Assembly: GCA_036785375.1 (NCBI GenBank)
Contig: JAWMAR010000076.1
Location: 7,564,001 to 7,628,000, forward strand
Direction: 5' to 3'
DNA from: Leucoraja ocellata
Lineage: Eukaryota
Length of the DNA: 64,000 bases
The position numbers were made by a program, and so were the translations under genes. Under the pieces are notes generated by a model, which was not told the origin of the DNA, did not search any database, and worked only from the letters and a program-made list of their open reading frames with translations. Shown here piece by piece: positions 3,830 through 54,490 of the stretch (position 1 is its first letter; each line of letters starts with the position of its first letter).

Positions 3830-4003
3830 GCTGGAACCCAGTTGGCTCTGATGGCACAAAGGGGAAGGAGAATGAGTCCTTGTTGTCTACAAAGTGGAGC
3901 CAAGTCCTTGTCACCCCCTTTCAAGTTTGTCCTGCATCCGCACCAGAGGCATCCTTTAAACCAACAGAGTCTTCAGTGATACAGACAGTCACACAGGAGG
4001 AAC
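3830..4003 (-). other. Gene A terminal (3'UTR) exon; 3' end not defined
   Basis: Acceptor ctcttgttgacag| followed by sequence that aligns by eye to 54324-54480 of gene B (ctgtgtgact..tcactgaagactctg..ggtttaaaggatgcctc..gcagga..aaggacttgg..cattctccttcccc). Confidence 0.7.
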
Positions 4004-4959
4004 CTGTCAACAAGAGCATAGGTTAATGCTGACTTCCTGCAGGTATAGAGGTTAGAGAAATTTGTTTAGTAATATAAATACTCTGACTTCATTTCAAGGA
4101 GCTGGAATATAAAGATTACAACCCAATGTATATACTTAGTCAGACACAGCTGGAGCGACTGTCTAATTCTGCACTTAATTTTAGGTAGGAGAGTCTAGCC
4201 CAAGGATGGAATGGCGATGATGCTTTTCACCTCCTGTCTGATTGGGGTGGTGTGAAGGGAGGACGGTGGAAAACAGGTGCTATCACTCACAATAAAGAAA
4301 AGTTATAACCTGGCTCTTCCAAGATCAAATGTATTAAGTGAGATAGGATCTGAAATCCTCAAACCCCCACCCATCACCAAGAGGGCATGGATTTAGATGG
4401 TTATTTATATTAAATTGGAGATTTCAAGACAAAGCATAATATATTATTTTCATCCATCAGGCCATTTCAGAGGTTCAGCACCTTCATATTTCCCTCCCCA
4501 GAGTGTTCCTCATTTCCTGATAGCCATAACCTCACAGTTCTGGTAACATCCGTGAAAACCTTAGTTGAATTGTAGGTTTTTGTTGCAGTGCAAGGATCTC
4601 TGCTGGCCAACACAAGTGCCTTGGTAGATCAAACTGGGACTGTGTTGAACTCATCTGCCTAATTATCCACCAAAAGAAAAGGCTTACAATGTTATAAAGG
4701 AATATATCCGTGGGATTTGGAAATTTCAGAATTCAAAGACATTGATAAAGAATGGCTAGATTTTGTACTTTCCTAGGAGCAAAAGCAGGCTGTAAAAGCT
4801 TTACATGGATGCAAAAAATAAACATTAGCGACTTATTGCTAGTGGGAGTGCTTTGCAGACAGGGGAAATTATATTGATAAACAAATAGAAAAACTGTGGA
4901 GGCATTTTTCACAATTTTCTTTGCATATCTTTTAATCATATGTCCCATGTACCTCCCAC

Positions 4960-5510
4960 ATCTCCCATTTCCATTTCCCAACTGTCTGTCTGAAGAAGGG
5001 CCTCGACCCGAAATGTAATCTCAAGTCAAGAGTTTATTGTCATGTGTCCCTGACAGGACAATGACATTCTTGCTTTGCTTCAGCACAACAGAACATAGTA
5101 GGCATTGACTACAAAACAGATCAGTGTGTCCATATACCATTATATACGCAAATACACACATGAATAAATAAACTGATGAAGTGCAAATAGCAGGTAATGG
5201 GCTATTAATGTTCAGAGTTTTGTCCCAGCCAAGTTTAATAGCCTGATGGCTATGGGGAAGTAGCTATTCCTGAACTGGTCATTGCAGTCTTCAGGCTCCT
5301 GTACCTTCTACCTGAAGGTAGCAGGGAGATGAGTGTTTGGCCAGGATGGTGTGGGTCCTTGATGATATTGCCAGCCTTTTTATGGCAGCGACTGCGATAG
5401 ATCCCGTCGATGGGAGGTCAGAGCCGATGATCGACTGGGCAGTGTTTACACCTTTTCTCCAGAGATGCTGCCTGACCTGCTGAGTTATTCTAGCTTTTTG
5501 TGTCTATCTT
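4960..5510 (+). mobile_element. Penelope terminal fragment interrupted by a minus-strand LINE 3' fragment (~5020-5450)
   Basis: The ctgaagaagggcctcgacccgaaa motif at 4990 resumes as ccttttctccagagatgctgcctgacc at 5451. The intervening segment begins with tttattgtc (reverse complement of gacaataaa), like the other Rex/L2-type 3' ends here. Confidence 0.6.
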
Positions 5511-5718
5511 AAGAGTTCCCATTATTGGGTATTAATTTAGACTGAAGATCGTTAAGGACCAGAGAAATAAAGAATAAGTTGGTAATTTTTTGGGAAGCTG
5601 TGACCAGTGAGGTGCTGCAGGGATTGGTGCCTCAGCTCAGCTTTTCATGATCTATTTCAGAGAGACTTTTTATTGTTGTAGACAAATCACAAAATTGTGC
5701 TGACGAAAGCTCAAGATA

Positions 5719-5975
5719 CAGTGCATTCGGAAAGTATTCAGACCACTTCACTTTTTCCACATTTTGTTACGTTAGTCTTATTTTAAAATTGATTCATTTT
5801 TTTAAATCATCAATCTACACACAATACCCCAGAATAAAAGCAGCAAAAACAGGTGTTGCAAAGTAATTAAAAAGAAATGTGAAATATCACATTTACATAA
5901 GTATTCAGGCCCTTTGCCATAACACTCAAAATTGCGCCTGGGTTCATCCTGCTTCCATTGATTAACCTCGAGATG
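5719..5975. mobile_element. Tc1/mariner terminal fragment (same family as 42253-43872)
   Basis: TA-CAGTGCATTCGGAAAGTATTCAGACCACTTCA is nearly identical to the TIR at 42253. Confidence 0.85.
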
Positions 5976-6365
5976 TTTTTCCCTCCCTCCTTCCTCTCCT
6001 TCTCCTTTTTCTCCCTCACCCTCATATTCCATCCCTCCTTCTCCCTCCCCTCTCCATCCTCTCCCTCCCTCCACCCCTCCCCCTTGAGCCCACCCACCAT
6101 TCTATAAAATCAAGGCCAATCCCACTGTAACTGCAATCCCACTGGTAACCATTCACCACTAGGCTTATCCAGAATTCTACCACTGCCTGAAAAATAATCA
6201 ATAGCTCAACTTCCACTGAGAAAGATAATTCCAATAGAGGGGGCAGCAAAGGATTACCAGGTTGATATCAGCAAACGGAGTTAATCTTATCAAGCTAAGA
6301 TGATCTCTGGTTTGAAATGCCAATTGCAGGCTTTGAATTTCTCCTGACAGGATCAGCTAGAACTA

Positions 6366-7973
6366 CAGTGCCCTCCATAATGTTTGGGACAAAGACCCAT
6401 CATTTATTTATTTACCTCTGTACTCCACAATTCGAGATTTGTAATAGAAAAAAATCACATGTGGTTAAAGTGCATATTGTCAGATATTATTATACATTTA
6501 GGTATCACCATGTAGAAATTACAGCTGTGTTTATACACATTTCAAGGCACCATAACGTTTTAGACACATGGCTTCACAGGCGTTTGTAATTGCTCAGGTG
6601 TGTTCATTTGCCTCCTTAATGCAGGTATAAGAGCTCTCAGCACCTAGCCTTTCCTCCAGTCTTTCCATCACTTTGGAAACTTTTATTGCTGTTTATGAAC
6701 ATGAGGACCAAAGCTGTGCCAATGAAAGTCAAATAAGCCATTATGAGACTGAGAAATAAGAATAAAATTTTTAGAGACATCAGCCAAACCTTACGCTTGC
6801 CAAAATCAACTGTTTGAAACATCGTTAAGAAGAATGAGAGCACTGGTAAGCTTACTAATCGCAAAGGGACTGGCAGGCCAAGGAAGACCTCCACAGCTGA
6901 TGACAGTAGAATATCTCTATAATAAATGAAAAACCCCATACAGCTGTCGAACGGATCGGAAACACTATTCAGGAGTCGGGTGTGGATTTGTCAATGACCA
7001 CTATCCGCAGAAAACTTCATGACCAGAAATACAGAGGATTCACTGCAAGATGCAAACAACTGGTTTGCCGCAAAAATAGGATGGCCGGATTACAGTTTTC
7101 CAAGAAATATTAAAATGAGGAACCACAGTTCTGGAAAAAGGTCTTGTGGATAGATGAGACGAAGATTATCTTATAGTTAAAGGCAAGAGCATAATATGGA
7201 GGAACGAAGAAACTGCTCAAGATCCAAAGCATACCACCTCATCTGGGTTTTATGGCCTGGACATGTATGGCTGCTGAAGGTACTGACTCACTTTTCTTCA
7301 TTGATGATATACCTGCTGATGGTAGCAGCATAATGAATTTGGAAGTGTATAGACACATCGTATCTACTCAAGTTCAAACAAATGCCTCAAAACTCATTGG
7401 TCGGCAGTTCATTCTACAGTAAGACAATGATCCCAAACATACTATTAAAGCAACAAAGGAATTTTTCAAAGCTAAATGGAATGGTCAATTCTTGAGTGGC
7501 CATGTCAATCACCCGATCTGAACGCAATTGAGCATGCGTTTTATATGCTGAAGAGAAAACTGAAGGGGACTACCCCTAAAACAAGCATAAGCTAAAGATG
7601 GCTGCAATACAGGCCTGGCAGAGATTCACCAGAGAAGACACCCAGCAACCGGTGATGTCTATGAATCGCAGACTTCAAGCAGTCATTGGCATGCAAAGGA
7701 TATGCAACAAAATACTAAACATGACTACTTTCATTTGCATGACATTGCTGTGTCCGAAACATTATGGTGCCTTGAAATGGGGGGGACTATGTATAAACAC
7801 TGCTGTAATTTCTACATGGCGAAACCAAAATGCAAAAAAAATGACCTTTATTAAAATCTGACAATGTGCACTTTAACCACGTGATTTTTTTCTATTATAA
7901 ATCTCAATTTGTGGAGTACAGAGGCAAATAAATAAATTATGGGTCTTTGTCCCACACATTATGGAGGGCACTG
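6366..7973 (+). mobile_element. Full-length Tc1/mariner transposon with a degenerate transposase, in the last intron of gene A
   Basis: TA|CAGTGCCCTCCATAATGT...ACATTATGGAGGGCACTG|TA with long (~200 bp) TIRs. Internal remnants GRPRKT, LWIDETKI, DNDPKH and SPDLNAIEH are broken by stops and frameshifts. Confidence 0.92.
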
Positions 7974-8362
7974 TAGGTGTCAGGCGCAAAATAAGAGCCG
8001 AGCCATTTAAGCCGAGTTAGAGGCAAGAAGAATCTCTCACTCCCCCCTCCCCGGAGTATCTATGAAATTATATCCAGTCAGCTGTGCAGGCTTTAAAGTG
8101 CAGTGTTGGAGCACATTCAAGGATGGTCAATATACATTTATTAATATTAAGCAAATCAAAGGATGTGGGGTTCATGTACGGAAGTGACAGAGGTCAGAGA
8201 TGACCTCACTGAATGGCAGAACTGGCAAGAGGCACTGATGGGTTCCTCTTTCTCATGGTTTTATAGTAGCACACCTGGGTGTGTGAATGAAACCACGATC
8301 TGCTTAGATAGAATTCCCGGATAATTCGATACTCACCACAGGACTCCAATCGCATTGTCCAG

Positions 8363-8457
8363 TTACCACCAACTCCAACAAACAGCTATAATCAGAACAA
8401 GCGCGCAGACGCTGGCACCAGTCGCACCAATTACCGTTCCCAACGGAATCCTGTGAA
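8363..8457 (-). CDS. Gene A hydrophobic/transmembrane exon with stop codon (IHRIPLGTVIGATGASVCALVLIIAVCWSWW*)
   Basis: Acceptor attttgcag| at 8458, in frame with the IgC exon; TAA at 8365-8363; strong donor |gtgagt after 8337. The paralogous exon in gene B ends the same way. Confidence 0.85.
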
Positions 8458-8793
8458 CTGCAAAATATTCACACGTGGCTTACCAGAATACTCATCATTA
8501 TCAACCTTCAGTACAAGACCCTCCAGATCAGCGTGTTTTACCCGTTTCCTCTTGAAACAAATTATTGAAACTTCTGCCATTGCCCTTTACGGGAGTGCAT
8601 TTCAGATTGCAACAATTTGTTTCATCTGTCTATTTTATATCATAAACATGAACTTTGCAACGAGTGATGTCTGAACCACAGTTTAAACAGAAATATAGAA
8701 CTCCATCTAACATAAAGGCCAGATTTGACGTGGTTAGACACCGTTGGCCAATGTAGTTAATGTTCTATACCACACAATGCATACCATACTCAC

Positions 8794-9075
8794 TTAAGGA
8801 AAAAGTTGACGATAATCCTTCGTCCAACTGCTGGTCCCACATTGTGCACGTGTAGTTGCCGGTGGGCCAGTTCACCAGTTCCAGCGTGCTCTTCACACAG
8901 ACACTGCCACCTGTGCAGTTAAAAAGCTCTGTGTGCGAGTGCCTGGTCAGATTCTCCCCCAATCCATTTTCCCAGGTGACGCTAGGAGCTGGGTACCACT
9001 CGGAGGACTCGCAGACCAGCACCAACAGGCCCAGATCATCACCAGACGAATGAATGACTGGTTGGGTGCCGAGAG
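8794..9075 (-). CDS. Gene A IgC (CD80-like C-set) exon
   Basis: 282-nt phase 1-1 exon bounded by ttttgccttgcag| and |gtgagt. Translation ALGTQPVI...LVCESSEWYPAPSVTW...NYTCTM matches the BTN/B7 IgC pattern C-x-S-x-G/E-W-Y/F-P-x-P-x-V-x-W. Confidence 0.92.
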
Positions 9076-11537
9076 CTGCAAGGCAAAAGTAAACAGTTTA
9101 AACTAAGCCAACAAAGCACAAGGAATCTTACCTCACTGGATCGCCTTGGCAATGTTGTCCATCTGGGCTCAGCTTGTGAATCGTTGATTAATTTTAGGCT
9201 TGTTGTGAGGAGAGAGTGGTGAGGGACAAAAAAAGTGATGGAGATCTTGAGTTTAAATGGATTCATGAAAGGACTTTGCAAACAGGTGCTGGATAACAAA
9301 ATAAAAAGTCAAATGGTATGACTTAGTCTATCTTTGGGCTCCAGGAAGAGGGTAAAGGCATGGGAAAAGATATGGAGACTACTGTTCAAAGGACTAAGTT
9401 ATATAGAGAAGAAGGGAAAATTCTTCTTGCAATATAGAAAGACAAGGGATGATTTAAATGGGTCTTTCTAAATTATGGTATTTTTAAGGACCAGCACTAC
9501 AGCTGCAACGAGTTATGGTGGTCTTGAATGTTCCTTAAAGGGGGACCTTGGAGATTTAGCTGGAACATAAAATACGGATCAAATCTTAAGGGGTAAACAG
9601 TCAAATTTGAGGGAAAGAATTAAAATGGAGAAGTTGAACTTCCTGTCTTTAAAGGACATGGGATAAATGGAGGTCTGCTCTGCCTATCAATTTTATTAAA
9701 TGATGAGACCTAAAGGGAAGTGGCACTGATAAACAAGTTAATTCAAATTGAATATTCTTCAGCAAGTCGTCTCTTTCTTTGTTCTGGTAAAGCATCATGT
9801 TTTCTGGTCAGGTTAAATTCCAAGAGATGTTAAAGCACGGCAGCTGAAGCAGCAGATCGAAGGCTAACCAATAGATTAGCCTGCTGGTTCTTCCATCATC
9901 GCCCTGGCAAAAGAATCTTGTTATGTATTCAGACTTCCGTTCCTTGCTCAATCCTGCTCTCTTGCGCTCCCAGCCTCCTGTGTACATCGTTCGGTATATC
10001 AGCCTTGGCTGGGGACCAACCCTTGCCCCAGAGCCACTGTAGGACAGGAGCTGGCACAGAAAAGAAACTCAGTACCCTTGCACTCCACAATATGAAGGAC
10101 ATACAACTACTTTCAATTCATTCAAGTCATTGATCTGTCATACATTTACAAATGAATGGGAAACCAAATCTTTCAGCTACATCCTGGTTATTTCTAGCTT
10201 GTGCACAAATCCTGCTTACATTGCCAAGAGGAGTAGCTGGACTACCAACAACCAGCACCTATCCCCAACCCCACCCTCTTCACATCTGAACAGATCAGTC
10301 ACTCCTCCTTCCATTCAGCAATTCCTTGCTGTCACCATGCCATATTCCCCATTTTCCTGAAATCAAACTCTCAACATGCACTAACTCTCAATATTATCCC
10401 TTCCCTTCTACTCCCTTATGTATTACAGAAAATGTGTGAAAATCACAGATAATGGATGGAATGATTCAGCATGGCTCGGAGGGTAGCCCGCTCCAAGCCC
10501 CCAATCCAGGTACTTGCACACAAAATAGAGGTCAACACCTCAGCGCAGTACCAAAGATCTGTTGCAACATCTGATGTGCCATCTTTCAGGTGTAATTTTT
10601 AACTGACACTCTGCCTCCTCTCATTCAGGGAAGGTTTGAAAAGATAATTGTTTTCAAAAGGTTCTGAATTCTCACCTGTCCTACACCAATCCCAAATTCC
10701 AATTCACCAGAACAAATGACCATGTTGGTAAAGTAGTCCCTTTTGTGGAATCTTGTGTGAAAATTAGCTGGGTCACCTCCATTGTAGCATTTTAAAACTA
10801 TATTACAAGTGACGTTGGGATTATTGGGGCTGTTAAGTTCCCAGAAAATGTTCCACAACACAATTTTTCATCATGTGAAACTGGGTCATCTGCGTATGTG
10901 TCAAGAAATGAATTGAAATGATAGTTTACTTTTTGCACAAATCTCGTAAAGAGTAAATTTTAATTCCCTGAATTCCCTTAACCAGCATTGGTTCTTCAGT
11001 TTGATGCTGTACAAATTCCTTTGACAACATCCCACAGAAACTTCAAATACCCTCTCTCGCTGGGAAATACAGCTCTTTGCTGACATTCACCAAAACTAGC
11101 ATGCATCTCAACTGCACATCCCTTGTTGCCTGCTACCAGGAAAATACAAAGGCTGCCTAGTATTGTCTGCTATACAGGCTACAGCCCTGACTTGAAGCCT
11201 CATATCACTCAGCAGCAGGTTCTTTCTACACCCCAACAGTGGAAATTTGAAACATTGTCACAGGAAAAAGAGGTGAACCCAATTGCTTTCTGCACTGTTC
11301 AACAAAACATTTAAAAGTCTGCACAGCTTCAACCTCGAGCTGAACCTCAACCAAGATCACTTACTTCAGCTCTGTAATATCATTTTATTTCCCTTATCTC
11401 TGATGAACAAATGAACATATTCAGAAATTTAAAGACAAAAAGCTTGCGCTAGCAGAAAATGGCTACAAAAGTACCAGATTTCTATAAAATCCCAACCAGC
11501 CCACTGTATTGAAAATTCTGTTTTTTTATTATGGGCT

Positions 11538-11848: not shown

Positions 11849-12636
11849 CTTGACCCACAGACTCTCTCCAACATCATCCATTTCTTTCTGCCTCCGAAAC
11901 ATCCCAGTCATCACCCCATCTCTGGGCGACCAGAGTAATGGACTTGGATGCTTGCCTGCCAACGATAACCAATTCCCAGGAACAGAGGCATTAATACAAA
12001 CCGTTTTACTCAGAGAGCAACCATGCTCTCATTCCTGGTGTTAAAGAAGGACCATTATATTTCTCATTGATCAAACCTGTATCTTACGATAATCAATAAG
12101 AGGGTACCGATTATACTTTACTTTTAATCAGCTCAACCAGACGACAGACACAACGCATTCCGAGGCACAAGGCATGGCATAGGTTTTAAATTACCTTGTC
12201 CAGATGGGAGAAGCAGTACTTCCAGTTGAAAGTACTCATCTCCAGATCCCTTCTGCTTTTATAAAGCACTGAAGAATAAGAAGTCAGCAATGTGGCACAT
12301 TGTGTTAGGGCTCTGACATACGACCACAAGTAATAGCAAAGAGTCTCAGGCCATGATCCCAATCCCACACACGATTTTCTGGACTTGCTGGGCCACTGTG
12401 GAAAGATACTGGGCGCAGATTGAGGGAAGGAACACAAACAAAGCCCAGGAGAGGATTTAATTTTGATTTTATATACACATATAGATATATCTAAAAAAAA
12501 GCTTTCAGTTTAGTATCCAAGTTTAAACACAGCTTTGCTCCAATCATGATCAGACTGATACCTGTACAAGAGTTTTAGAAAGAAGCAATTAATTCATTAT
12601 CTTTGAACCAGTGAAACAAGTATCACTCATCCTTAC

Positions 12637-12984
12637 CTCGGATACTGAGGAAGACTTGTGCATCGGAGTCTTGTGATCGGCTGGAGACATGGAGTTTATA
12701 GATTCCAGTGTCTAACAGAGACATGTTCCTCAGTCTCAGGGACAAGTTCCCATTGGAAATCTCGTTGGGAAAGACTTCAGTGCGGTTGCGAAAACTTGGA
12801 TCTTGCTCCGTCTGGTTGCTTTGGTTCCTTGGGTAAATGTAGACAATTCCCATTGTATCTGCCTTCTTCCAAACAAACGCCACACTGCCAATCTTATTCC
12901 CAGTCTTAAATCGACACTGGATAACATCATCATCTCCAGCTTTGGCTGTGACTCTGTCTTCGCTGCACTGCACCTTGAGGCGAC
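12637..12984 (-). CDS. Gene A IgV-set exon (B7/BTN-like; resembles VTCN1/CD276-type V domains)
   Basis: 348-nt phase 1-1 exon bounded by tttatag| and |gtaagg. Translation RLKVQCSEDRVTAKAGDDDVIQC...VW...EQDPSFRNRTEVFPNEISNGNLSLRLRNMSLLDTGIYKL... carries B7-family V-domain motifs (Q-x3-F/Y-R-x-R-T, GNxSLRL, DxGxY). Confidence 0.92.
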
Positions 12985-17402: not shown

Positions 17403-20400
17403 ATAGAAACATAGAAAATAGGTGCAGGAGTAACCCATTCGGCCCTTCGAGCCTGCACCCCCATTCAATATGATTATGGCTGATCATCCAACTCAGTATC
17501 CTGTATCTGCCTACTCTCCATACCCTCTGATCCATTTAGCCACAAGGACCACATCTAACTCCCTCTTAAATATAGCCAATGAACTGGCCTCAACTACCTT
17601 CAGAGAATTCCACAGATTCACCACTCTCTGTGTAAAAAATGATTTTCTCATCTTGGTCCTAAAAGATTTCCCCCTTATCCTTAAACTGTGACCACTTGTT
17701 CTGGACTTCCCCAACATCGGGAACAATCTTCCTGCATCTAGCCTGTCCAACCCCTTAAGAACTTTGTAAGTTTCTATAAGATTCCCCCACAATCTTGTAA
17801 ATTCTAGCGAGTACAAGCCGAGTCTATCCAGTCTTTCTTCATATGAAAGTTCTGACATCCCAGGAATCAGCCTGGTGAACCTTCTCTATACTCCCTCTAT
17901 GGCAAGAATGTCTTTCCTCAGATTAGGAGACCAAAACTGTACGCAATACTCCAGGTGTGGTCTCACCAAGACCCTGTACAACTGCAGTAGAACCTCCCTG
18001 CTCCTATACTCAATTCCTTTTGCTATGAATGCTAACATAACATTCGCTTTCTTCACTGCCTGCTGCACCTGCATGCCCACTTTCAATGACTGGTATACCA
18101 TGACACCAAGGGCTTGTTGCATCTCCCCTTTTCCTAATCGGCCACCATTCAAATAAGTCTACTTCCCCGTGTTTGCCACCAAAGTGGATAACCTCACATT
18201 TATCCACATTATACTGCATCTGCCATGCATTTGCCCACTCACCCAACCTATCCAAGTCACCTTGCAGCCTCCTAGCATCCTCCTCACAGCTAACACTGCT
18301 CCCCAACTTCGTGTCATCCGCAAACTTGGATATGTTGCATTCAATTCTCTCGTCCAAATCATTAATATATATTGTAAATAGCTGAGGTCCCAGCACTGAG
18401 CCTTGCGGTACCCCACTAGTCACTGCCTGTCATTCTGAAAAGGACCCGTTTACTCCTACTCTTTGCTTCCTGTCTGCCAGCCAGTTTTCTATCTACATCA
18501 ATACTGAACCCCCATTACTGTGTGCTTTAGGTTTGCATGCTAATCTCTTATGTGGGACCTTGTCGAAAGCCTTCTGAAAGTCCAGAAATAACACATCCAC
18601 TGGTTCTCCCTTATGCATTCTACTAGTTACATCCTCGAAAAATTCTAAAAGATTCGTCAGACATGATTTACCTTTCATAAATTCATGCTGACTGTCCAAT
18701 AATCTCACCACTTTCCAAATGTGCTGCTATCCCATCTTTAATAACTGACTCTAGCAGTTTACCCACTACCGATGTTAGACTAACTGGTCTGTAATTCCCC
18801 GCTTTCTCACTCCCTCCCTTTTTAAAAAGTGGGGTTACATTAGCTACCCTCCAATCCTCAGGAACTACTCCAGAATCTAAAGAGTTTAAAAAAATGATCA
18901 CTAATGCATCCACTATTTCTGGGGTTAATTCCTTAAGTACTCTGGTATGCAGCCTATCTGACCCTGGGGATTTATCGGCCTTTAATCCATTCAATTTACC
19001 TAACACCACTTCCCGGCTAACCGGGATTTCACTCAGTTCCATCTCATTTGACCCCCCGTCCCCTGCCATTTCCGGCTGATTATTTATGTCTTCCTTAGTG
19101 AAGACAGAACCAAAGTAGTTATTCAATTGGTCTGCCATGTCCTTGTTCCCCATGATCAATTCACCCGTTTCTGACTGCAAGGGACCTACATTTGTTTTAA
19201 CTAATCTTTTTCTTTTCACATATCTATAAAAACTTTTGCAGTCAGTTTTTATGTTCCCTGCCAATTTTTTTCCATAATCTATTTTCCCTTTCCTAATTAA
19301 TCCCTTTGTCCTCCTCTGCTGGACTCAGAATTTCTCCCAGTCCTCTAGTAGGCTGCTTTTTCTGGCTAATTTGTATGCTTCATCTTTTGTTTTGTTACTA
19401 TTCCCTGATATCTCTTGTTATCCACGGATGTACTACCTTCCCTGATTTATTCTTTTGCCAAACTGGGATGAACAATTTTGTAGTTCATCCATGCAGTCTT
19501 TAAATGCCTTCCATTGCCTATCCACTGTCAACCCTTTAAGAATCAATTGCCAGTCTATCTTGGCCAATTCATGTCTCATACCCTCAAAGTTACCTTTCTT
19601 TAAGTTCAGAACCCGTGTTTCTGAATTAATTATGTCACTCTCCATCCTAATGAAGAACGCAACCATATTATGGTCACTCTTGCACAAGGGGCCACGCACA
19701 ACAAGACTGTGAACTAACCCTTCCTCATTACTCAATACCCAGTCTAGAATAGCCTGCTCTATCGTTGGTTCCTCTACATGTTGGTTTAGAAAAATATCCC
19801 GCATACATTCCAAGAAATCCTCTTCCTCAGCACCCCTGCCAATTTGATTCATCCAATCTATATGTAGATTGAAGTCACCCATTATAACTGTTTTACCTTT
19901 GTTGCACGCATTTCTAATTTCGAGTTTGATGCCATCCCCAACTCCACTACTACTGTTAGGTGGCCTGTACACAACTCCCACTAGCGTTTTCTGCCCCTTA
20001 GTGTTTCGCAGCCCTACCCAAATCGATTCCACATCCTCCAAGCTAATGTCCTTCTTTTCTATTGTGTTAATCTCCTCTCTAACCAGCAACGCTACCCCAC
20101 CTCCTTTTCCTTTCTGTCTATCCCTCCTGAATATTGAATATCCTTGGATGTTCAGCTCCCAGCCTTGGTCACCCTGGAGCCATGTCTCCATGATCTCAAC
20201 TATATCATATTCATTAATAACTATCTGCACATTCAACTCATCCACCTTATTACGAATGCTCCTTGCATTGAGACATAAAGCCTTCAGGCTTGTTTTTACA
20301 ACACTCTTACCCTTTATACATTTATGTTGAAAATTGATTTTTGATTTTGATTTTTGCCCTGGATTTGTCTGCCTGCCACTTTTACTTTTCACGTTGCTAC

Positions 20401-20605
20401 CTATTGCTTCTACCCTCATTTTGCACCCCTCTGTCTCTCTGCTCACACATTTAAGAAACCCACCACCTCTTATTTTCTGTTTATTATATTTTTCTTCTTT
20501 CTCCCCTAAATGTTGGGTCTGAGTGCTTCCCTTCTCTGCCTCCTGCCTCACACACTGTCTACTAGCTTTCTCTATTTGAGCCCTTCCCCCAACTGTCCTA
20601 GTTTA
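17403..20605 (-). mobile_element. Near-complete CR1/HER1 LINE ORF2 (APE endonuclease + RT), frameshifted, in the gene A leader-IgV intron
   Basis: Consecutive ORFs encode NARSIRNK/ETWL/GDFN/SDH (APE), [40 protein letters not shown] and the C-terminal CR1 region; 3' tail ctatgtttctat. Confidence 0.95.
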
Positions 20606-21715: not shown

Positions 21716-21776
21716 CGGCTATGGTAATTTCAACAGCAGCAAACAGGCAAACGAGCAAGTTGAGCAGGCAGTTCAT
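21716..21776 (-). CDS. Gene A (B7/butyrophilin-like Ig superfamily) signal-peptide exon, MNCLLNLLVCLFAAVEITIA(G)
   Basis: Minus strand reads cttctttctttag|aATG...GCC G|gtaaat: polypyrimidine acceptor, ATG, 20 hydrophobic codons + 1 nt. The phase-1 donor joins in frame to the IgV exon (G|GT CGC = G-R). Confidence 0.75.
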
Positions 21777-22039
21777 TCTAAAGAAAGAAGTAAAATAGCA
21801 AAGTTATTGCATTGAATTTTCTTCAATTACAAATAATAAACCAGCTGTATTTGTCTCCCTTCATGACATACAACTCTTCTCTACAAGGGGGGAGTTGATC
21901 ACTCCAACCATCAAGCAACCTTGCACTGCTGTGCCCATCGAAGTTCAATTCAATCTCTCATCTGCAATTTTAAGACTAATCCTACATGCAAGATTCTACA
22001 AGTGGAAACCTTAGAGATACAAAGTGGAAACAGGTTCAC

Positions 22040-35213: not shown

Positions 35214-38200
35214 TAATTGAGACAGGAAACAGTATTACAATGCTTCCCGGTGGGTACTAAACAATTGCAGCAAGACATTTTCACTTGTGTACTCAAATCT
35301 CCCTCATTACAAAGGCCACGCTATTATCTTTCTTAATTACTCGTTTGTCCCTGTGCCTTTAACTCTATCTCCCTTTCAACAACGTTGTTTACTACACTAT
35401 TCCAAAGGGATGCTCAGAACATCCCCCCACCTCCCAAGATTTTATGTTTCAATTTGTTGCCTTAACTTTTAGAATTTCTCAACCCAAGATTTTAAATATT
35501 TGTCGGATATCTATCACTGTTGCAGATGTATGATTATTTCCCATTTTAGAACAACAGAAATACTGATCAACGATAACCAAATATTTTTCTAATTTCAAAG
35601 GGCTCTTTGAGACTATCCTTCCTCTTAAATAGCAATCAGCCTTTCCTACTGTGAAAACCTCCTGGTTCTGGAATGCCAGAGCATAAGCTGGACCTTTTCA
35701 ACAATTTGTGGATGTCCACACACTCGAAGGGGTATCAAGAAGAGAAGAGAGAAATGCCATCTTGCCTGAGCAAACACCAGAAGATGGACCAGCTAATTTC
35801 TAGAGTTTGAATCACCAATCAAATTTAAAAAACAAGTAGCATGTCATGTCACAAACCAGTAAAAGAACAAATACAACAGCTCCAAAAGTCAAGGTTCATC
35901 CCATTGCCTAAAGCAGACATGACCACAGCAGAAGAAAGTTCATATGAGGTGACTAATGTTGATGATGCAGTTGCTGGCATTTTATTATTAGAATTAATTG
36001 CAAACAAGTATGCACGGGTAAGACATTTTATTGCCCATCCCAGGGTTGTTCTAAAAAGCTGGTGAATCATTCGAAACAGCTTTTGATACAATTGACAGCC
36101 TTGAGGCCACAGCCATCCTTTTTTTTAAAATATATAGTTTAAGCTAAAATTAAGACAAAATACGAACAGATTTTTTTCCCTAAGAGGCAATTAGTAATAA
36201 TTTGGTGAAGGAACACGAGGCCAGGTCACCAAGCATGCATTAGGAGCAGAAACTCATAGGGAAAGAAGGACAAGGGTGGTCAATGGCAGAGAAAGAACAG
36301 CAAAATGTAGGGAAAGCCCATTTGACTTCTGCACCCGCTCCACCATTTAACCATATATAAATAGCAGGCACGTGCTGTCAGGGTAGGCAAGGTCGGCAAA
36401 GCCTATCCTGACTAAAATTATAAAATGGTAAAAAAATATCATATATACCAAATATAAATAAAACATATATAAAATGGTCATAAATAATAACTGCACGGAA
36501 GAATTATGCTTCCCTAAGAGATCGAACTCTTAGGGGGGCATAATTCACCCATGCCTTTCATACAATCAATCTAAAACGCAGAAGTATGGGGTACTCACGA
36601 GCTGTCAACGCTGCTTCAAGCCATCAGTGGCAACGGTCCATAAAGACAGCTCAAATTCTGCCTTTACACCGTGGATTGCGTGTATGTGCGGCATTGCGCA
36701 CTGCAGAAGTACATTTCTTTGAACTATATGTTTTTAAATACTTTATTAAGAGATAGGACCTATTGAAGACAAATTACTTGATAACAGACGAGAGACCCAT
36801 CTGCGCTTGTGCGGTTTCCAAGTTTTTGTGAATTCACTGCACATCTAAAATTCACTCTTGAGGATAGTGAATATTTGGCACTGCCTATTTGAAATGGCTC
36901 CACTGCTAGATCTAGGCAACATGCAAACTGGATGAACAGCACCTCATATTCAACATGGGCAGGAAGAGGCACGGCGTCTCAGGCTTGCCCCGGACAATCG
37001 GTCTTACCCTCAGTAGAGCCACTGGTGTCAGAGGCCTGTTCCCAAAAGCCCAGACTCGACTATGCATTGGCAACGGTGGTCTCAGGTTTAGCCCAGTAGC
37101 TCAGTCTTCCTCAAACGTGTGACAGGGGAGCACAGCTAGCAGGGAGAAGCCCACTTTCTTTCCCTTCCTCCCTCCTCTTTCTAATCTGGTTCTTCCCTCC
37201 TCTGGCTTGAACTTCTGGGAGTCGGCTGTCGAGGTTTAGGTGGCCAAATCAGAAGCCAGCTAATTGGACCCAGCTGTTATCAATGATGCTGGGGATTGGC
37301 CTTCCCCGCCTCTTCGGCAGTGATAGAGATCAGAGCTGCATCCAAGAGTGGGCTCTGTCACCGTAGATAAATGCATGAAGTGGTTACGAGTTCCATTAAC
37401 CATCGTAAAGAAGCCCTGATTAAGAAGAGTAGATTTGGCAGAGCATAGAAAGGGGGAGGATGGAATGAATTCCTTACAAGGAATGAGCAGAGTGGGTGTA
37501 GACAAGATACAGGATAAGGAGAAGTATGAAATAAGTTGAGGGCAAAAATATACAGAAACAATGGATCTGTCAGAACAGTCCTACCTGTGCATCTTGGGAA
37601 GGATGTACAACCAGTTTGTAGATTGGATGACAACACGACAGTAGGCTCTGAAGTAAAGAGGTTTTAATGAAATTAAGAATATGACTTCCAGGAAACAATA
37701 CCCTAATACGTTTGGTCACCATTATGTGACAGGTAGGTGGTGACTTGCATTCAAAGCCTTGAATAGAATTCAAGCCATTTCATCAAACCACAGGTCAACA
37801 CTCAGTCTGAAGAAGATTCTCGACCTGAAATGTCACCTATTCCTTCTCTCCAGAGATGCTGCCTGTCCCGCTGAGTTACTCCAGCATTTTGTGTCTACCT
37901 TCAATTTAAACCAGCATTTGCAGTTCTTTCCTGCTCATCAAACCACAGTATGCTTTACTAGTACCCCATTCACCATTTTAAGCATTAAATCCTTCTTCAG
38001 TGCATCTCAGTATATACAAAATGTACAACAGTTGCTCATTCTGGCTACTCGCACAGCATATCCAAAACATGAACGCATAACAGAGTACATACGCGGGTAT
38101 CTGGAGTAAGTAACTCACTACTATATGAAATCAGCAGGTTTGCAGCAGCAGAAATGTATTCTCCATAATCTTCAACATCACAGCCCAGCCAACATTTTTC

Positions 38201-38622: not shown

Positions 38623-38959
38623 AAATAACTGACATGACGTTGCCGGGGGCGGGACTTGTCAGCGATTGGTCCAGACCCCCGCGTCCATCACTTCACTGTG
38701 GAGGGATGAACATTGTCCCACAACTCCGATCCACCTGATCCGCAGCCTGCAGAGGGTGGCCGTGGAAGAGTGGGGGCTGTGCACCTTTGGCCGCTTACAA
38801 CTTGGTGCCTCTCCCCCCTCTTCTCTCTCCCCCTCTCTTTCTCTCGCTCTCTCTCCTCCGTCTCCACCAGCGGGAGGGTGGGTGTCATTTTCCCCACACA
38901 AGCCATAGGTGACCAGGCAATCAGAACCCATGCACCAAGTTGACAATTCTTTTCTTCCC

Positions 38960-39400
38960 TCCCGTACCACCTGCTCCCCGGGCACTTTCCCTTGCAATCG
39001 CAAGAGATGCAACACTTGTCCCGTTACCTTCCCCCCTCGACTCCATTAAAGGACCCAAGCAGTCATTTCAGGTGCGACAGAGGTTAACCTGCATCTCCTC
39101 CAACCTCATCTATTGCATCCGCTGCTCTAGATGTCAGCTGATCTACATCGGTGAGACCAAGCGGAGGCTTGACGATCGTTTCGCCGAACACCTCCGCTCG
39201 GTCCGCAATAACCAAGCGGACCTCCCGGTGGCTCAGCACTTCAACTCCCCCTCCCATTCCGTATCTGACCTCTCTGTCCTGGGTCTCAATGGCCAGAGCG
39301 AGCAACACCTGAAATTGGAGGAACAGCACCTCATATTCTGTTTGGGGAGTCTGCATCCTGGGGGCATGAAGATTGAATTCTCGCAATTTGTTAGCTCTTG
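38960..39400 (+). mobile_element. Penelope-like retroelement GIY-YIG endonuclease fragment
   Basis: Encodes TCISSNLIYCIRCSRCQLIYIGETKRRLDDRFAEHL...LPVAQHFN...EEQHLIFCLGSLHPGGMKI. Confidence 0.92.
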
Positions 39401-39471
39401 TAGTCTCCTCCCTTCCTCAGCCCCTCAGGCTCTCCTCCCATCCCCCAGCCTTCGGGCTCATCCTCCGCCTT

Positions 39472-39671
39472 NNNNNNNNNNNNNNNNNNNNNNNNNNNNN
39501 NNNNNNNNNNNNNNNNNNNNNNNNNNNNNNNNNNNNNNNNNNNNNNNNNNNNNNNNNNNNNNNNNNNNNNNNNNNNNNNNNNNNNNNNNNNNNNNNNNNN
39601 NNNNNNNNNNNNNNNNNNNNNNNNNNNNNNNNNNNNNNNNNNNNNNNNNNNNNNNNNNNNNNNNNNNNNNN
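39472..39671. other. Assembly gap (200 N)
   Basis: Run of N. Confidence 1.
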
Positions 39672-42252: not shown

Positions 42253-43872
42253 CAGTGCATTCAGAAAGTATTCAGACCACTTCAGTTTTTCCACATTTTG
42301 TTACGTTGCAGCCTATATATTCTAAAATGGATTAAATTCTTTTTTTTCCACCAATCTACACGCAATACCACATAATAAAAAAGCGAAAACAGGTGTTTAA
42401 AATTTTTTACAGTAATTAAAAAGAAATAACTGAAATATCACATTTACACAAGTATTCAGACCCTTTACTCAGTACTTTGTTGAGGCACCATTGGCAGCGA
42501 TTACAGCCTCAAGTCTTCTTGGGTATGACGCTACAAGCTTGGCACACCTGTATTTGGGTAATTTCTCCCATTCTTCTCTGCAGATCCTCTCAAGCTCTGT
42601 CAGATTGGATGGGGAGCGTCGATGCACAGCTATTTTCAGGTCCCTCCAGAGATGTTCGATCGGGTTCAAGTCCGGGCTCTGGCTGTGCCACTCAAGGACA
42701 ATCACAGACTTGTCACGAAGCCCCTCCTGCATTGTCTTGGCTGTGTGCTTAGGGTTGTTGTCCCTGCCCCTGTCTGAGGTCCAGAACGCTCTGCAGCAGG
42801 TTTTCATCAAGGATCTCTCTGTACTTTCCTCCGTTAATCTTTCCCTTGATCCTGACTAGTCTCCCAGTTCCTGCCGCTGGAAAATATCCCCACAGCATGA
42901 TGCTGCCACCACCACCATGCTTCATCGTAGGTATGGTATTGGCCAGTTGATGAGCGGTGCCTGGTTTCCTCCAGACATGACACTTGGCATTCAGGCCAAA
43001 GAGTTCAATCTTGGTTTCATCAGACCACAGAATCTTGTTTGTCATGGTCTGAGAGTCCTTTAGGTGCCTTTTGGCAAACTCCAAGCTGGCTGTCATGTGC
43101 ATTTTACTGAGGAGTGGCTTCCGTCTGGCCACTCTACCATAAAGGCCTGATTGGTGGAGTGCTGCCGATATAGTTGTCGTTCTGGAAGGTTCTCCCATCT
43201 TCACAGAGGAATTCTAGAGCTCTGTCAGAGTGACCATCGGGTTCTTGGTCACCTCCCTGACCAAGGCCCTTCTCCCCTGATTGCTCAGTTTGGCCAGGTG
43301 GCCAGCTCTATGAAGAGTCCTGGTGGTTCCAAAGTTTCTTCCATTTAAGAATGACAGAGGCCACTGTGCTCTTCTGGACCTGCAATGTTGCAGAAATATT
43401 CTTATACCCTTCCCCAGATCTATGTCTCGACACAATCCCGTCTCGGAGGTCTATGGACATTTCCTTCGTCTTCATGGCTTGGTTTTTGCTCTGACATGCG
43501 CTGTCAACTGTGTGCCCTTATATAGACAGGTGGGTGCCTTTCCAAATCATGTCCAATCAATTTAATTTACCACTGGTGGACTCCAATCAAGTTGTAGAAA
43601 CATCTGTAGGATAATCAATGGAAATAGGATGAACCTAAGCTCAATTTTGAGTGTCATAGCAAAGGGTCTGTACAATTGTGTAAATGTGATATTTGAGTTA
43701 TTTATTTTTAATTACTTTGCAAACATTTCCCAACACCTGTTTTCACCTTCATTCTGGGGTATTGTGTGTAGATTGATCATTAAAAAAAAAGAACGTAATC
43801 CATTTTAAAATATGACTGTAACGAAACAAATGTGGAAAAAGTGAAGGGACTGAATACTTTCTGAATGCACTC
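42253..43872 (-). mobile_element. Full-length Tc1/mariner transposon (second family) with a frameshifted DDE transposase
   Basis: TA|CAGTGCATTCAGAAAGTATTCAG ... CTGAATACTTTCTGAATGCACTC|TA. Minus-strand ORFs encode [28 protein letters not shown] and [11 protein letters not shown]. Ends ~315 bp upstream of the gene B IgV exon. Confidence 0.93.
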
Positions 43873-44187
43873 TATCTCTCATAGCATATTTTTGTGCTTT
43901 AGTCCCACTCTGTTACTGGATATATCTATGCATCTCCTACAGTGAAGAGGGGCGTAAAATTGTGTTTAATGCCACAGTCTTTTCCTCATCCCCATTATAT
44001 ATTCTCCTGTCTTTGTCTACAAGAGCACTCTACAATCAAGGTATCCCTTGTTCCCTGAGTGTCATGTCATTGAAAGCATCTGTACTGATGTTAATCCTGC
44101 TCCCTCCACCGGTTAGTGCAAGAGTACTGGCTAGGATTTAATAATGGCTTGGATGGACTCGATGACCATCTATATCATTTGTTGCAG

Positions 44188-44517
44188 GTCACGTGGGGGT
44201 GAAGTGTGTGGAGGACCACCTAACTGTGAAGGTTGGAGAAGATCTTCTTGCCCGGTGCCATTATTCTTCCCCTGATGAAGCGAACAGCACTACTCTCAGT
44301 TGGACAAAGTTGGATACCATGACGATAATCTATAACTATTCAATCAGCCAGACAGAGCAAGATCCCAGCTCCCAAGACCGAGCTGAGGTTTTTGGCAGTG
44401 AAGGGAACATATTCCTGAGACTGAGAAACGTGACTCTTCTGGACTCTGGAATCTATGGACTTCGCGTTTCCAGTCGAACCCAAAGTAATGAGACCCACAT
44501 TATGTTAGGAGTAAGAG
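44188..44517 (+). CDS. Gene B (paralog of gene A) IgV-set exon
   Basis: 330-nt phase 1-1 exon bounded by catttgttgcag| and |gtaaga. Translation HVGVKCVEDHLTVKVGEDLLARC...SW...QTEQDPSSQDRAEVFGSEGNIFLRLRNVTLLDSGIYGLRVSSR is colinear with the gene A IgV. Confidence 0.9.
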
Positions 44518-47220: not shown

Positions 47221-47222
47221 TA

Positions 47223-49460: not shown

Positions 49461-49568
49461 TGTGGTGGCATGTGTTTTCAAGCTTTTGAATCTTCTGCGT
49501 GATGGGAGGGGGGGAGAGCAAAGATGACCAGGGTGTGAGTGTTACAGATGTTTGTTCTTCCTCTTCAG

Positions 49569-49853
49569 CCATTGGTGAACCACCAGTCATTCGTTCCCAC
49601 GTGACCGACCAGGGCCTCTCTGTGCTGGTGTGTGAATCTTCTGGGTGGTTCCCAGAGCCGTCGGTGACCTGGGAGAACGGGCTGGGAATACAGCTGACCG
49701 AGCACGCCCACACAGAGAACCTGAACAGTACAGATGGCAGCATCCGAATGAGGAGCGTGCTGAGCCTGGGCCATGGGCCCATTAACAACTACACCTGCAC
49801 CATGAGGGATCGCCACCTGAACGAGACAGTGTCCTTCGTGTTTGTGATTCTGT
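49569..49853 (+). CDS. Gene B IgC exon
   Basis: 285-nt phase 1-1 exon bounded by ttcttcctcttcag| and |gtgagtatgg (same donor context as gene A). Translation AIGEPPVI...VLVCESSGWFPEPSVTWENGLG...NYTCTM. Confidence 0.92.
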
Positions 49854-49899
49854 GTGAGTATGGAAGCAAGTTCTTTAACGGTGCCTGAAATTTAGTTTA

Positions 49900-50897: not shown

Positions 50898-51080
50898 TTT
50901 AGTTTAGTTTAAAGATACAGACCTTTCGTCCCACCGAGCCTGCGTCGACCAGCGATCCCCATACATTAGCACCACTCTACACATTAGGGACAATTTACAA
51001 TTTTTACCGGCCAATTAACCTACAAACTGGTGTGTCTATGGAATGTGGGAGGAAACCGGAGCACCCTGGGAAAACCCAAG
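50898..51080 (-). mobile_element. HE1-like SINE fragment
   Basis: Same core as 49900. Confidence 0.75.
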
Positions 51081-52352: not shown

Positions 52353-52444
52353 TTCCAGGGTCACCTTGGCATATCGCAGCTGGTGCAGCAGGGACTATTG
52401 TCTGCTCTGTGATCTTGACCGTTGCAATTTATTGGAGTTGGTAA
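52353..52444 (+). CDS. Gene B hydrophobic/transmembrane exon with stop codon (FPGSPWHIAAGAAGTIVCSVILTVAIYWSW*)
   Basis: Acceptor ccacccctcccag|, in frame with the IgC exon; TAA at 52442-52444; donor aag|gtatgt after 52457. Homologous to the gene A TM exon. Confidence 0.82.
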
Positions 52445-53069
52445 CAATTTTGTAAAGGTATGTATGCAGTCAAGATCAAAGTCTTCACTGTTGCTCATTG
52501 TGACGGCGGAGGCCATTTATGCCTCAGCTCCATTCCGTCATTTGTTTAGATGATGACTAATCTGTTTCTCATGCATGTCTGCGTTCCATTTTCCACATGA
52601 GCCATGCCTTCAAATCTGTTGATTTCTTGAACACTCCATTTGACCCCCAGGATTTAGCTTGAGGGGAAAGCTTCCCATTGCCCTTTTTACGATTTCTGAC
52701 AACCCTGAGCCATCTGACTCCAAGGTCATGCCCTCGAGCTCAGAGGAATTTTTTTTCCACCATTTAATCTTTGAAGACCTTTAATACTTTCAAACGCTAC
52801 AATTTTGCTAAATGGAGGGAATATAGAGACTGTGTATCCTCTCCTTGTAACACTAAACCCTGTGTTAGTGCAGTGCATATTGGCCAGCACTGTCTCTAAT
52901 CTTACTCACGGCTGGTGTGGTGGCAGTTCACTCTGTCACCCCTCCTCCCTTCACCCCCCCACTCTGCTCCTTGTCATCCCCCCCCATGCATTCAGTCCAT
53001 CTCCCCTCAACCTCCCCCCCGTGCACTCTTGGTGGCTATCCGATTGCGCAGCCATTCCTGCCTATTAGG

Positions 53070-53365
53070 TACACTCACACACACATGTACACACTCACAT
53101 TCACACACACTTACACACGTACACTCACACACAAACACGCACGTAATCACTCATACACATGCACTCACACACACACATATGCATTCACACACACAGACTC
53201 ACACACACACTCACAAACACACACATACTCACACTCACAAACACACACTCACATACACACACAGACATACACTCACAGACAGAGACACTTACAAACACAC
53301 ACACATACACTCACGAACACACACACACACAAACACTTACACTCACACTAACTGACTCACACACC
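53070..53365. repeat. Compound (CA)n microsatellite
   Basis: Directly visible; it explains the His/Thr-rich spurious ORFs. Confidence 0.95.
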
Positions 53366-53993
53366 ATATATATGGCAGTAAACTCTCTTGAATTTACCCA
53401 CACGGCTCGCTACTTTGGGGCCTCGGCAGTCAGCGGCACATCCGCAATCTGCGCGACCTCTGCACTCACCGGAAATTATGCAACCTGTCCACTAAGCGGA
53501 AGTCACGAAATGAGCGGGACTTTTGAACCAGACGCAGTCGTATCTAATTAAGCATTGCAGTTTCAAGTACAGGCAGGGCAGCAGGTCAAACAACTCATTT
53601 CATTTTCATTAAGGGCCAATAAATCATTTATTCAAATACATTGCAGACTCACAGTTCAGTAGATTCCCAGTTTAGAATGAGTCGTGACCTCTCCCTCACG
53701 ACCTTGCAGAGTGACTGAGTCACGTCTAGGCATCCGGGGTTTTATAGTCCTGCCCATCCCCCCCACCCCCCCGGAAGGGGCATTACCTTCATCGTGGTGA
53801 TTGACAGGCGAGAGAATCTCAATGTCATAACTCTATTTTTCATCGATGGGAAAAATCCTCGGGACCTGATCAGTGGAGGAGGACTGTGAGTAAGAGGGCC
53901 AAAAATCATAACAATATATGGTAGCATTCTTTCTAAAATCAATATACAGTGCAGACAGGAAATGGTCAGTTTGAGACTTTTAATTATATGGAT
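53366..53993 (-). mobile_element. Probable Helitron-like non-autonomous element (5' part)
   Basis: Minus strand begins A|TCCATATAATTAAAA like the 46411/47223 copies and carries a CA tract; the 3' hairpin was not identified. Confidence 0.4.
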
Positions 53994-54323
53994 TACCAAA
54001 GGGAATCACGTTCTGTACATCAAATCTCTCGTGAGGGGGTTTGAATAAGCTGTCCATACATTACCATTCTAATTTCCACAAGACTGTCCGCTCCCCAGTG
54101 TTGCAGATGAATGAAGCAAGTGAGTATTAAACCACTGCTCTTACATAGAACATAGAACAGTACAGCACAGGGCTGACCCTTCTGCCCACAATGTCTGTGC
54201 TGAACATGATGCCGTTAAACTAATCTCCTCTGCCAGCATGTGATCCATGTCTCTCCATTTCCTGCATGCAACATGCCCATCCAAAAGCCGCTCAAACGCC
54301 ACTATATCTGCTCTTATTCACAG

Positions 54324-54490
54324 ATTTCCCCTGTGTGACTGTGTCACTGAAGACTCTGGTTTAAAGGATGCCTCCATTGCAGACGCAGGACGATCTGAAA
54401 GTGAGTGGAAAGGACTTGGTTTCATCTGAACACAGAAAGGACATTCTCCTTCCCCCCTCTGTGACATCGGAGCCATCTGTGATGGTCCCT
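54324..54490 (+). other. Gene B terminal (3'UTR) exon; 3' end not defined
   Basis: Acceptor ctcttattcacag| followed by sequence homologous to gene A 4003-3830. Confidence 0.7.

Follow-up and report, generated by a model that had tools for sequence, protein, structure and literature searches.

Human VTCN1 (B7-H4) and proteins of the butyrophilin-like (BTNL) type belong to the described systems with which the genes reported here are best compared. One account of human VTCN1 describes a gene of six exons and a protein of 282 amino acids (aa) with a membrane segment, four conserved cysteines in the ectodomain, both soluble and membrane forms, and a disputed glycosylphosphatidylinositol (GPI) link (PMC6735664). 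BTNL proteins act as heterodimers of paralogues (PMC4717187). Here, we describe a pair of related genes in a 64,000-base stretch of the Leucoraja ocellata genome (contig JAWMAR010000076.1, positions 7,564,001 to 7,628,000; GC content 0.43), hereafter the window, in which four immunoglobulin (Ig) exons lie two on each strand. Genes A (minus strand) and B (plus strand) are head-to-head paralogues, and from their sequences we consider it fairly probable that both are functional and encode type I, tail-less IgV-IgC surface proteins of approximately 260 aa from an elasmobranch branch of the B7/butyrophilin family. Of the lineages that possess antibodies, T-cell receptors and the major histocompatibility complex, cartilaginous fish are the oldest still living, and to our knowledge their repertoire of co-signalling ligands has been little studied.

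Exon boundaries were read from the sequence and all ends were then checked by script. Each exon was searched singly, and the exons of neither gene were joined for search, fold or tree. In both genes, the first Ig exon matched Pfam V-set and the second matched C2-set_3, each above the curated cut-off. Solved structures matched by the exons included CD276, BTN, BTNL, VTCN1, PD-L1 and ICOSLG, in agreement with the original prediction, which had placed the pair in the B7/butyrophilin family. Scored per domain, the gene A IgV was closest to VTCN1 (64.6 bits), followed by MOG (47), CD276 (ca. 43) and BTNL8 (36). A profile of the wider family defined below gave a similar order against IgV-only chains (VTCN1 68.6, MOG 52.7, BTN3A1 45.4 and PD-L1 44.9 bits). 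Against whole V-C units, the best matches of this profile were BTNL8 (107.9 bits), BTN1A1 (102.1) and BTNL3 (101.3), with no VTCN1 IgC in the copy of the PDB searched; BTN2A1, BTN3A, CD276 (ca. 82 per unit), ICOSLG and PD-L1 came next. The layout of the B7/butyrophilin family, with one exon per domain, phase 1 junctions, a signal peptide and an anchor, was found complete in gene A and, in gene B, without a leader in the readable part of the window. The leader-IgV, IgV-IgC and IgC-anchor junctions are all phase 1 in the two genes. The exon sizes first reported (348 and 282 nucleotides (nt) in gene A, 330 and 285 nt in gene B), the junction phases and the stop codon after the anchor all proved exact, and the exon ends carry AG/GT (Table 1).

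Gene A is transcribed and spliced. RNA was examined over positions 3700-9200 in three contig runs from three studies and in one raw-read RNA run. The joint between the IgC and anchor exons (8457 to 8794, GT..AG on the minus strand) was carried by one contig in each of the three runs and by 22 raw reads, and the joint between the anchor exon and the 3' exon (4003 to 8337) by one contig in each of the three runs and by 25 raw reads. As the contigs carry the spliced form, the contig runs were taken as RNA. The predicted spliced 3' exon was thus seen in RNA, but it is longer than had been assumed and passes position 3700, beyond which the RNA contigs carry ca. 1.7 kb more. Words were sampled from a 751-nt stretch, about half of it exonic, and each of 14 runs from five studies contained 0.48-0.49 of them; in four runs with another organism label, which are probably the source of the genome, the value was 0.93-1.00. 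Under the usual 50-55 nt rule, a stop codon close before the last intron spares an mRNA from nonsense-mediated decay. The stop codons lie 26 nt (gene A) and 13 nt (gene B) before the last intron, so that both mRNAs would be kept out of this decay. An alternative donor at the conserved TGGTAAC of both genes, which if joined to the 3' exon would add 10 residues in A and bring an immediate stop in B, was rejected; the RNA joints listed, outside which there are 14 more, use the downstream GTGAGT donor.

The 5' part of gene A was extended by the transcript-derived protein P0203, an open reading frame (ORF) on contigs no longer than 4125 nt, which joins an upstream exon, the leader, the IgV exon and an alternative exon. 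Its leader and IgV are the same as those of gene A in the window, and its residues 6-28 match the upstream exon at 100%, up to the donor. The original prediction described gene A as complete, with a signal peptide and 261 aa. The leader was found, and the count was reproduced by arithmetic (61 + 348 + 282 + 92 nt from ATG 21776), but the upstream coding exon had been overlooked. An in-frame ATG at 37593 in this exon adds three residues, giving 264 aa, the length at which the Rhinoraja orthologue (P0160) is annotated. The gene A protein may therefore be 264 aa long and start in the upstream exon, judging from these reading frames. With this exon, the gene extends over more than 35 kb, and its first exon lies ca. 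16 kb further upstream than first described. The CxSxGWxPxP motif of IgC, which the original prediction named as typical of the B7/butyrophilin family, occurs in gene B and in each of the 19 orthologues inspected; in gene A the motif reads CESSEW, with a GAG (Glu) codon at 8999-9001 where all 19 orthologues have Gly. RNA contigs covering this codon agree with the window, with no other letters observed.

The structure of gene B rests on its own exons and on P0170, a 260-aa ORF on public assembly contigs no longer than 1970 nt, in which the gene B IgV, IgC and anchor exons are joined; in the window the three exons extend over more than 8 kb. P0170 matches the gene B anchor at 29 of 29 positions, ending at the stop codon. 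One of two assembly gaps lies in the IgV-IgC intron; P0170 joins the IgV and IgC in order and in frame, so that transcript-level evidence supports the order of the coding exons on its two sides. P0170 and the Rhinoraja orthologue (P0172) show the gene B leader, and this leader had no match in the readable part of the window. Gene B is thus incomplete as assembled, and the other gap sits where its leader would be expected. A motif scan for the leader returned weak candidates only, such as one 72 nt before the IgV exon, and the real leader of P0170/P0172 differs from them. The first exon of gene A is ca. 6.5 kb from the gene B IgV exon on the opposite strand, with this gap between them, and no CpG island was evident in the interval between the two genes.

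Table 1. Exons of genes A and B and assembly gaps in the window (positions counted from its first base; UTR, untranslated region).
Feature	Position	Strand	Evidence and remarks
Gene A upstream exon, 5' UTR + ATG CAC AG	at least 37585..37652	minus	in-frame ATG 37593; donor GT 37584-37583; P0203 match
Gene A signal-peptide exon, 62 nt	21716..21777	minus	second ATG 21776; 3' end phase 1; AG/GT; matched by P0160, P0008, P0013, P0203
Gene A IgV exon, 348 nt	12637..12984	minus	phase 1 at both ends; AG/GT; Pfam V-set E 8e-9
Gene A alternative exon, 214 nt	12195..12408	minus	in IgV-IgC intron; in-frame stop 12305-12307; AG/GT
Gene A IgC exon, 282 nt	8794..9075	minus	Pfam C2-set_3 (butyrophilin-type IgC) E 9e-14; AG/GT
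Gene A stalk + membrane-anchor exon, 121 nt	8337..8457	minus	TAA 8363-8365; 26 nt of 3' UTR, then GTGAGT donor
Gene A 3' UTR exon	3700..4003, running on below 3700	minus	acceptor at 4003; RNA contigs
Gene B IgV exon, 330 nt	44188..44517	plus	V-set E 2e-11; P0170 matches 109/110; AG/GT
Gene B stalk + membrane-anchor exon, 105 nt	52353..52457	plus	TAA 52442-52444; 13 nt, then GTATGT donor; donor proposed from the analogous one of gene A
Gene B IgC exon, 285 nt	49569..49853	plus	C2-set_3 E 6e-14; P0170; AG/GT
Gene B presumed 3' UTR exon	54324..54479	plus	acceptor inferred; span is the block conserved with gene A only
Assembly gap (N run)	39472-39671		between gene A first exon and gene B IgV; flanks unlike
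Assembly gap (N run)	46506-46659		gene B IgV-IgC intron, beside CA-rich tract; coding sequence unaffected

The range of the family was determined in several searches. An exhaustive HMMER search with the gene A IgV returned 2604 proteins at E <= 0.001. Among the best 150 of these 2604, inspected as clusters, four had at least 45% identity (84, 75, 60 and 45%) and all four belonged to the family, namely those of stingray (Hemitrygon/Hypanus), catshark (Scyliorhinus torazame), electric ray (Narcine) and P0008 (from a Logan assembly); the other 146 had at most 37%. Word-indexed searches were made with a catshark member as the query (18 proteins at E <= 1e-5) and then with a profile of 16 sequences. 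Members were found in Cetorhinus, Chiloscyllium, Heptranchias, Pristiophorus, Heterodontus, Carcharodon, Rhincodon, Scyliorhinus, Mustelus, Rhinoraja, Hemitrygon, Narcine, Pristis and Mobula. Against the profile, complete members reached at least 318 bits and the incomplete members P0165 and P0013 scored 237 and 223 bits, compared with 136 bits for the best non-member. The matches in Callorhinchus were SPRY-bearing butyrophilins or truncated forms of these, and the SPRY-bearing ones fell outside the family in trees. The automatic names given by NCBI to members were inconsistent (BTNL2, BTNL8, BTN1A1-like, CD276-like, VTCN1-like and MOG-like).

Trees of the IgV and IgC domains, built separately with nine BTN/CD276-type outgroups, separated the family from these outgroups with supports of 100/100 (IgV) and 93/94 (IgC). 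Group A, containing gene A, was recovered with supports of 95/76 (IgV) and 87/86 (IgC). Gene A of the window grouped with Rhinoraja A (90% and 97% identity); the neighbours of gene B were P0170 and Rhinoraja B. As sharks and rays are found in each of the two groups, the duplication that produced A and B predates the split between sharks and rays, which dates to roughly 250-300 million years ago. In Heterodontus, Carcharodon and Rhinoraja, a single chromosome-sized contig carries genes of both groups, which indicates linkage. Our literature search, reaching few subscription journals, found no paper on this family. These comparisons of domain sequences support a distinct, apparently unstudied tail-less subfamily with two orthologue groups across sharks and rays. 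The uncharacterised B7 subfamily of the original prediction is thus supported as a clade distinct from these outgroups and apparently unstudied, but the range observed was elasmobranch and not chondrichthyan as a whole, and the genes had already been annotated automatically by NCBI in many species.

The IgV domain of the family departs from the canonical cysteine pattern. Among 16 aligned members, the only invariant IgV cysteines were those of the A strand and the B strand, and the F-strand position was occupied by Leu. The F-strand Cys was present in CD276, BTN1A1, BTNL3, BTNL8 and the nine outgroups. Across 627 V-domain matches in the fetched proteins, the pattern Cys-Cys-Leu occurred in 28, all from this family. 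The B-to-F-strand disulfide that is canonical in the IgV of the B7/butyrophilin superfamily is thus missing, with Leu in 28 of 28 family V domains. The A-strand cysteine may instead bond with the B-strand cysteine or with another chain. A third relative with the same cysteine shift was observed in Scyliorhinus canicula (P0174); it has a V-C-C arrangement and a cytoplasmic tail of 23 residues, and it shares a chromosome-sized contig with the group B gene of the catshark.

The two halves of the IgV domain also have different histories. Over the C'-F part (60 columns), the A and B proteins are identical at 59/60 positions in Pristiophorus and 54/60 in Heterodontus, compared with 23/41 and 21/41 over the A-C strands. 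A tree of the C'-F part paired A with B in batoids (97/92), Pristiophorus (94/80) and orectolobiforms (94/96), and group A was monophyletic in 0% of its bootstrap trees. The remaining 55 IgV columns recovered a group A clade with 100/100 support. A contiguous shared tract is a mark of gene conversion between neighbouring copies, and the C'-F half of IgV, which evolves in concert between the paralogues, resembles a gene-conversion tract. In the species of the window, this tract is old, with 57% identity between A and B compared with 29% in the rest of the domain. Homogenised pairs include P0158/P0162, P0159/P0163 and P0156/P0164 (IgV alignment columns 46-109).

The tail-less end first noticed in the two window genes, where a stop codon directly follows the hydrophobic segment, is a property of the family. 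Among 20 family proteins, 18 end inside this segment, comprising eight of group A with ...WSWW (group ending ...CWSWW) and ten of group B with ...SW (group ending ...YWSW). The two exceptions, both read-through forms, are Rhincodon X1 and Mobula X2, in which the stop comes after IgC. The stalk and anchor are the best-conserved part of the protein, with a mean pairwise identity of 0.91 in group A and 0.73 in group B (IgV 0.75 and 0.59; IgC 0.85 and 0.68), and the anchor is rich in small-xxx-small motifs. This combination of highest conservation and small-xxx-small motifs favours a packed membrane helix over a cleaved GPI signal, and the hydrophobic segment is, on this evidence, most probably a genuine membrane helix, packed against a second one.

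Two further parts of the transcripts, the alternative exon and the start of the 3' exon, are also conserved. The alternative exon in the IgV-IgC intron of gene A follows IgV in both P0203 and P0008, and the protein ends after 34 more residues; it is predicted to yield an IgV-only product. The tails of P0008 and P0203 match the alternative exon of the window at 34 of 34 residues, and the IgV of P0008 is only 82.5% identical to that of the window. The stingray isoforms P0013 and P0151 read this exon in another frame (55/58 identical by hand count of the alignment). An exon that appears near-identical across skates and stingrays in differing frames points to constraint on its nucleotides and not on its peptide; it could serve as a poison exon or have a regulatory role. 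The starts of the 3' exons of A and B (3839-4003 and 54324-54479; the first ca. 165 nt) are 77.5% identical over 182 nt, with a stretch of ca. 55 nt near 90% identity, compared with 65-70% in the coding exons. The possibility that this exon once encoded a lost tail was ruled out by A/B indels of 4, 3, 1 and 1 nt and by stop codons in all frames.

The remainder of the window is rich in repeats, and no gene flanking the pair lies within it. A search of the whole window against Rfam at the gathering threshold gave 0 matches, and a tblastn search with the SPRY-bearing proteins P0178 and P0183 found only the Ig exons described above, with no B30.2/SPRY exon and no further Ig exons in the window. 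Large parts of the last intron of gene A (4988-5539 and 6276-7931) are high-copy repeats with RNA contig depths of hundreds to thousands. This intron also contains one copy (5684-5978) of a repeat of ca. 300 nt, the other copy of which (43598-43900; 78.7% identical) lies upstream of the gene B IgV exon. Long ORFs at 17500-20550, 23115-24170, 33589-34390, 38940-39470, 42469-43204 and 62708-63595 resembled transposons; by eye they looked like reverse-transcriptase or endonuclease parts of elements of the long interspersed element (LINE) type, a GIY-YIG-type element and Tc1-type transposases. Such ORFs occupy the first introns of gene A and the space between the genes.

Several observations weigh against the reading of A and B as two functional genes for tail-less surface proteins. 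Gene B has no leader in the readable part of the window, and its junction between the anchor and the 3' exon rests on analogy with gene A. The contig runs X1, X3 and X7 were only guessed to be RNA. RNA contigs of ca. 1 kb run from the IgC exon of gene A on the minus strand into its upstream intron (at 9048-9200 and beyond) with roughly half the depth that the spliced contig shows, and may represent intron retention, unspliced transcripts or an internal start. Gene A departs from its eight orthologues at 5 of the 110 positions on which these all agree; one of these changes is the G-to-E substitution in the GW motif of IgC and the other four fall at IgV positions invariant in group A. These changes suggest that gene A is changing faster in this species, where it could be under relaxed constraint. 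Exon-by-exon Nei-Gojobori counts between A and B gave proportions of nonsynonymous (pN) and synonymous (pS) differences of 0.28-0.35 and 0.66-0.71 and a dN/dS ratio of ca. 0.2, which is a crude value because the dS of the paralogues is saturated. The end of the proteins at the hydrophobic segment also fits a GPI-anchor signal, and their function and binding are inferred from sequence. Some of these points, namely the five changes in gene A and the missing leader of gene B, together with a locus that by eye is full of transposon remains, are what would be expected if one or both copies were decaying pseudogenes or artefactual Ig fragments among transposons. We nevertheless regard decay as extremely improbable, as all coding exons are open with canonical splice sites, spliced RNA exists for gene A, and spliced ORFs from public assemblies exist for both genes (P0170 and P0203). 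Moreover, gene B differs at 0 of the 49 positions that are invariant in its 11 orthologues, and pN is well below pS, in line with the purifying selection, rather than decay, that had been proposed for the pair. A GPI-attachment signal would be cleaved to leave the mature proteins as lipid-anchored IgV-IgC ligands. Small residues, a spacer and a hydrophobic end are the usual layout of such signals, and by eye the family has small residues (G, A, S, T) 10-15 positions before a hydrophobic end of 11-15 residues, at which the proteins stop exactly and without basic stop-transfer residues. A GPI link has also been reported, and disputed, for VTCN1 (PMC6735664). However, a segment that is the most conserved part of the protein, at 0.91 in group A across sharks and rays, would be unusual for a signal that is removed, and the small-xxx-small motifs and Trp-rich end fit a packed membrane helix; we therefore consider lipid anchoring rather unlikely. 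In the favoured reading, the proteins would be ligands held at the membrane that offer their IgV to a receptor on a different cell. Without a tail, inward signalling would pass only through partners, and the anchor helix would pack against the paralogue, a second copy of its own or another subunit; the alternative exon after IgV would supply the IgV-only product.

The identity of the family and the pairing of its members call for a similar assessment. Groups A and B might be elasmobranch co-orthologues of VTCN1 (B7-H4/B7x), their oddities being those of a known gene. VTCN1 provided the best single-domain solved match of the gene A IgV and ranked first among IgV-only chains for the family profile, three family members are named VTCN1-like by NCBI, and gene A with its upstream exon has six constitutive exons, the number given for VTCN1 (PMC6735664). 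The same account describes four conserved cysteines in VTCN1, which is at odds with the missing F-strand Cys in all 28 family V domains examined. In addition, the best whole V-C matches were butyrophilins (with the PDB copy holding no VTCN1 IgC), the gene B IgV had no match to a VTCN1 chain at E <= 1e-8, the clusters next to a group B protein in the Atlas were named for HHLA2, CD276, BTN1A1 and ICOSLG rather than VTCN1, and none of the word-indexed family searches, which depend on shared words, turned up VTCN1. Co-orthology with VTCN1 is thus a possible but not a probable explanation. The original prediction further proposed a co-regulated, heterodimeric pair; in this reading, A and B would be expressed from a shared divergent promoter and form an obligate heterodimer by analogy with BTNL3/BTNL8 or Btnl1/Btnl6. 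Both paralogues have been kept since before the shark-ray split and share one chromosome-sized contig in three species, the first exon of gene A is near the gene B IgV on the opposite strand, both anchors are strongly conserved with small-xxx-small motifs, the invariant A-strand Cys could form an interchain bond, and the C'-F half of IgV is kept alike in the paralogues within lineages. However, the first exon and promoter of gene B are outside the readable window and no CpG island marks the interval; gene conversion between neighbours yields a shared tract without functional coupling, and the extra Cys may pair with the B-strand Cys inside the domain. On balance, such an analogy with BTNL pairs is tentative and seems unlikely to hold. 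A fuller version, in which an obligate heterodimer, possibly disulfide-linked, is joined through the A-strand Cys and the highly conserved tail-less membrane helices, is expressed from a shared divergent control region, and keeps its C'-F half alike by repeated conversion and its A-B-C-G strands chain-specific as the elasmobranch counterpart of BTNL, appears doubtful and distinctly less likely still.

The pair of tail-less genes is a clean example, both conserved and expressed, of a branch of the B7/butyrophilin family apparently limited to sharks and rays. Three of its traits lend themselves to bench tests: an IgV that lacks the canonical disulfide, an anchor conserved above the ectodomain, and a conversion tract across half of IgV. 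If the heterodimer reading were true, the pair would be a counterpart, with its IgV devoid of that disulfide, of the BTNL pairs by which gamma-delta T cells of tissues are shaped. If the proteins pair, heterodimeric ligands of the BTNL kind would be much older, or would have arisen more than once. If the genes are plain VTCN1 co-orthologues, the result would be routine annotation, mainly helping to replace inconsistent automatic names.

Compared with known systems, the family shares features with several and differs from each in others. VTCN1 has the same order of signal peptide, IgV, IgC and a hydrophobic end practically without a tail, encoded in six exons and made in soluble and membrane forms, and its IgV is the nearest solved IgV to that of gene A and to the family profile. 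Four cysteines are conserved in the family, but one of them is an A-strand Cys in place of the F-strand Cys; the family also consists of two ancient head-to-head paralogues and has an extremely conserved anchor. The butyrophilins and BTNL proteins resemble the family in their C2-set_3 IgC and in having one phase 1 exon per domain, and they are its best solved V-C matches. In contrast, the family has neither heptad exons nor B30.2/SPRY, stops right after the anchor and differs in its IgV cysteine pattern; with no B30.2 domain, it is not butyrophilin proper.

CD276 was the top match of both Ig exons by summed score, and several members are named CD276-like by NCBI. Its scores per domain were modest (ca. 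43 bits for IgV and 20 for IgC), however, and it grouped with the outgroups in both trees; it also has a cytoplasmic tail (P0188) and the canonical IgV disulfide. The A-strand Cys is shared with the multi-V proteins of percomorph teleosts named BTNL2, CD276 homolog or VTCN1 (such as P0012, P0047, P0114 and P0141), in which 22 V domains have the pattern C,C,C, and in the sea-bream protein P0006 the F-strand Cys is missing too, giving the pattern C,C,S. Unlike the family, these teleost proteins, with ca. 30% identity to it, form V-V or V-V-V arrays with cytoplasmic tails, and most keep the canonical cysteine pair.

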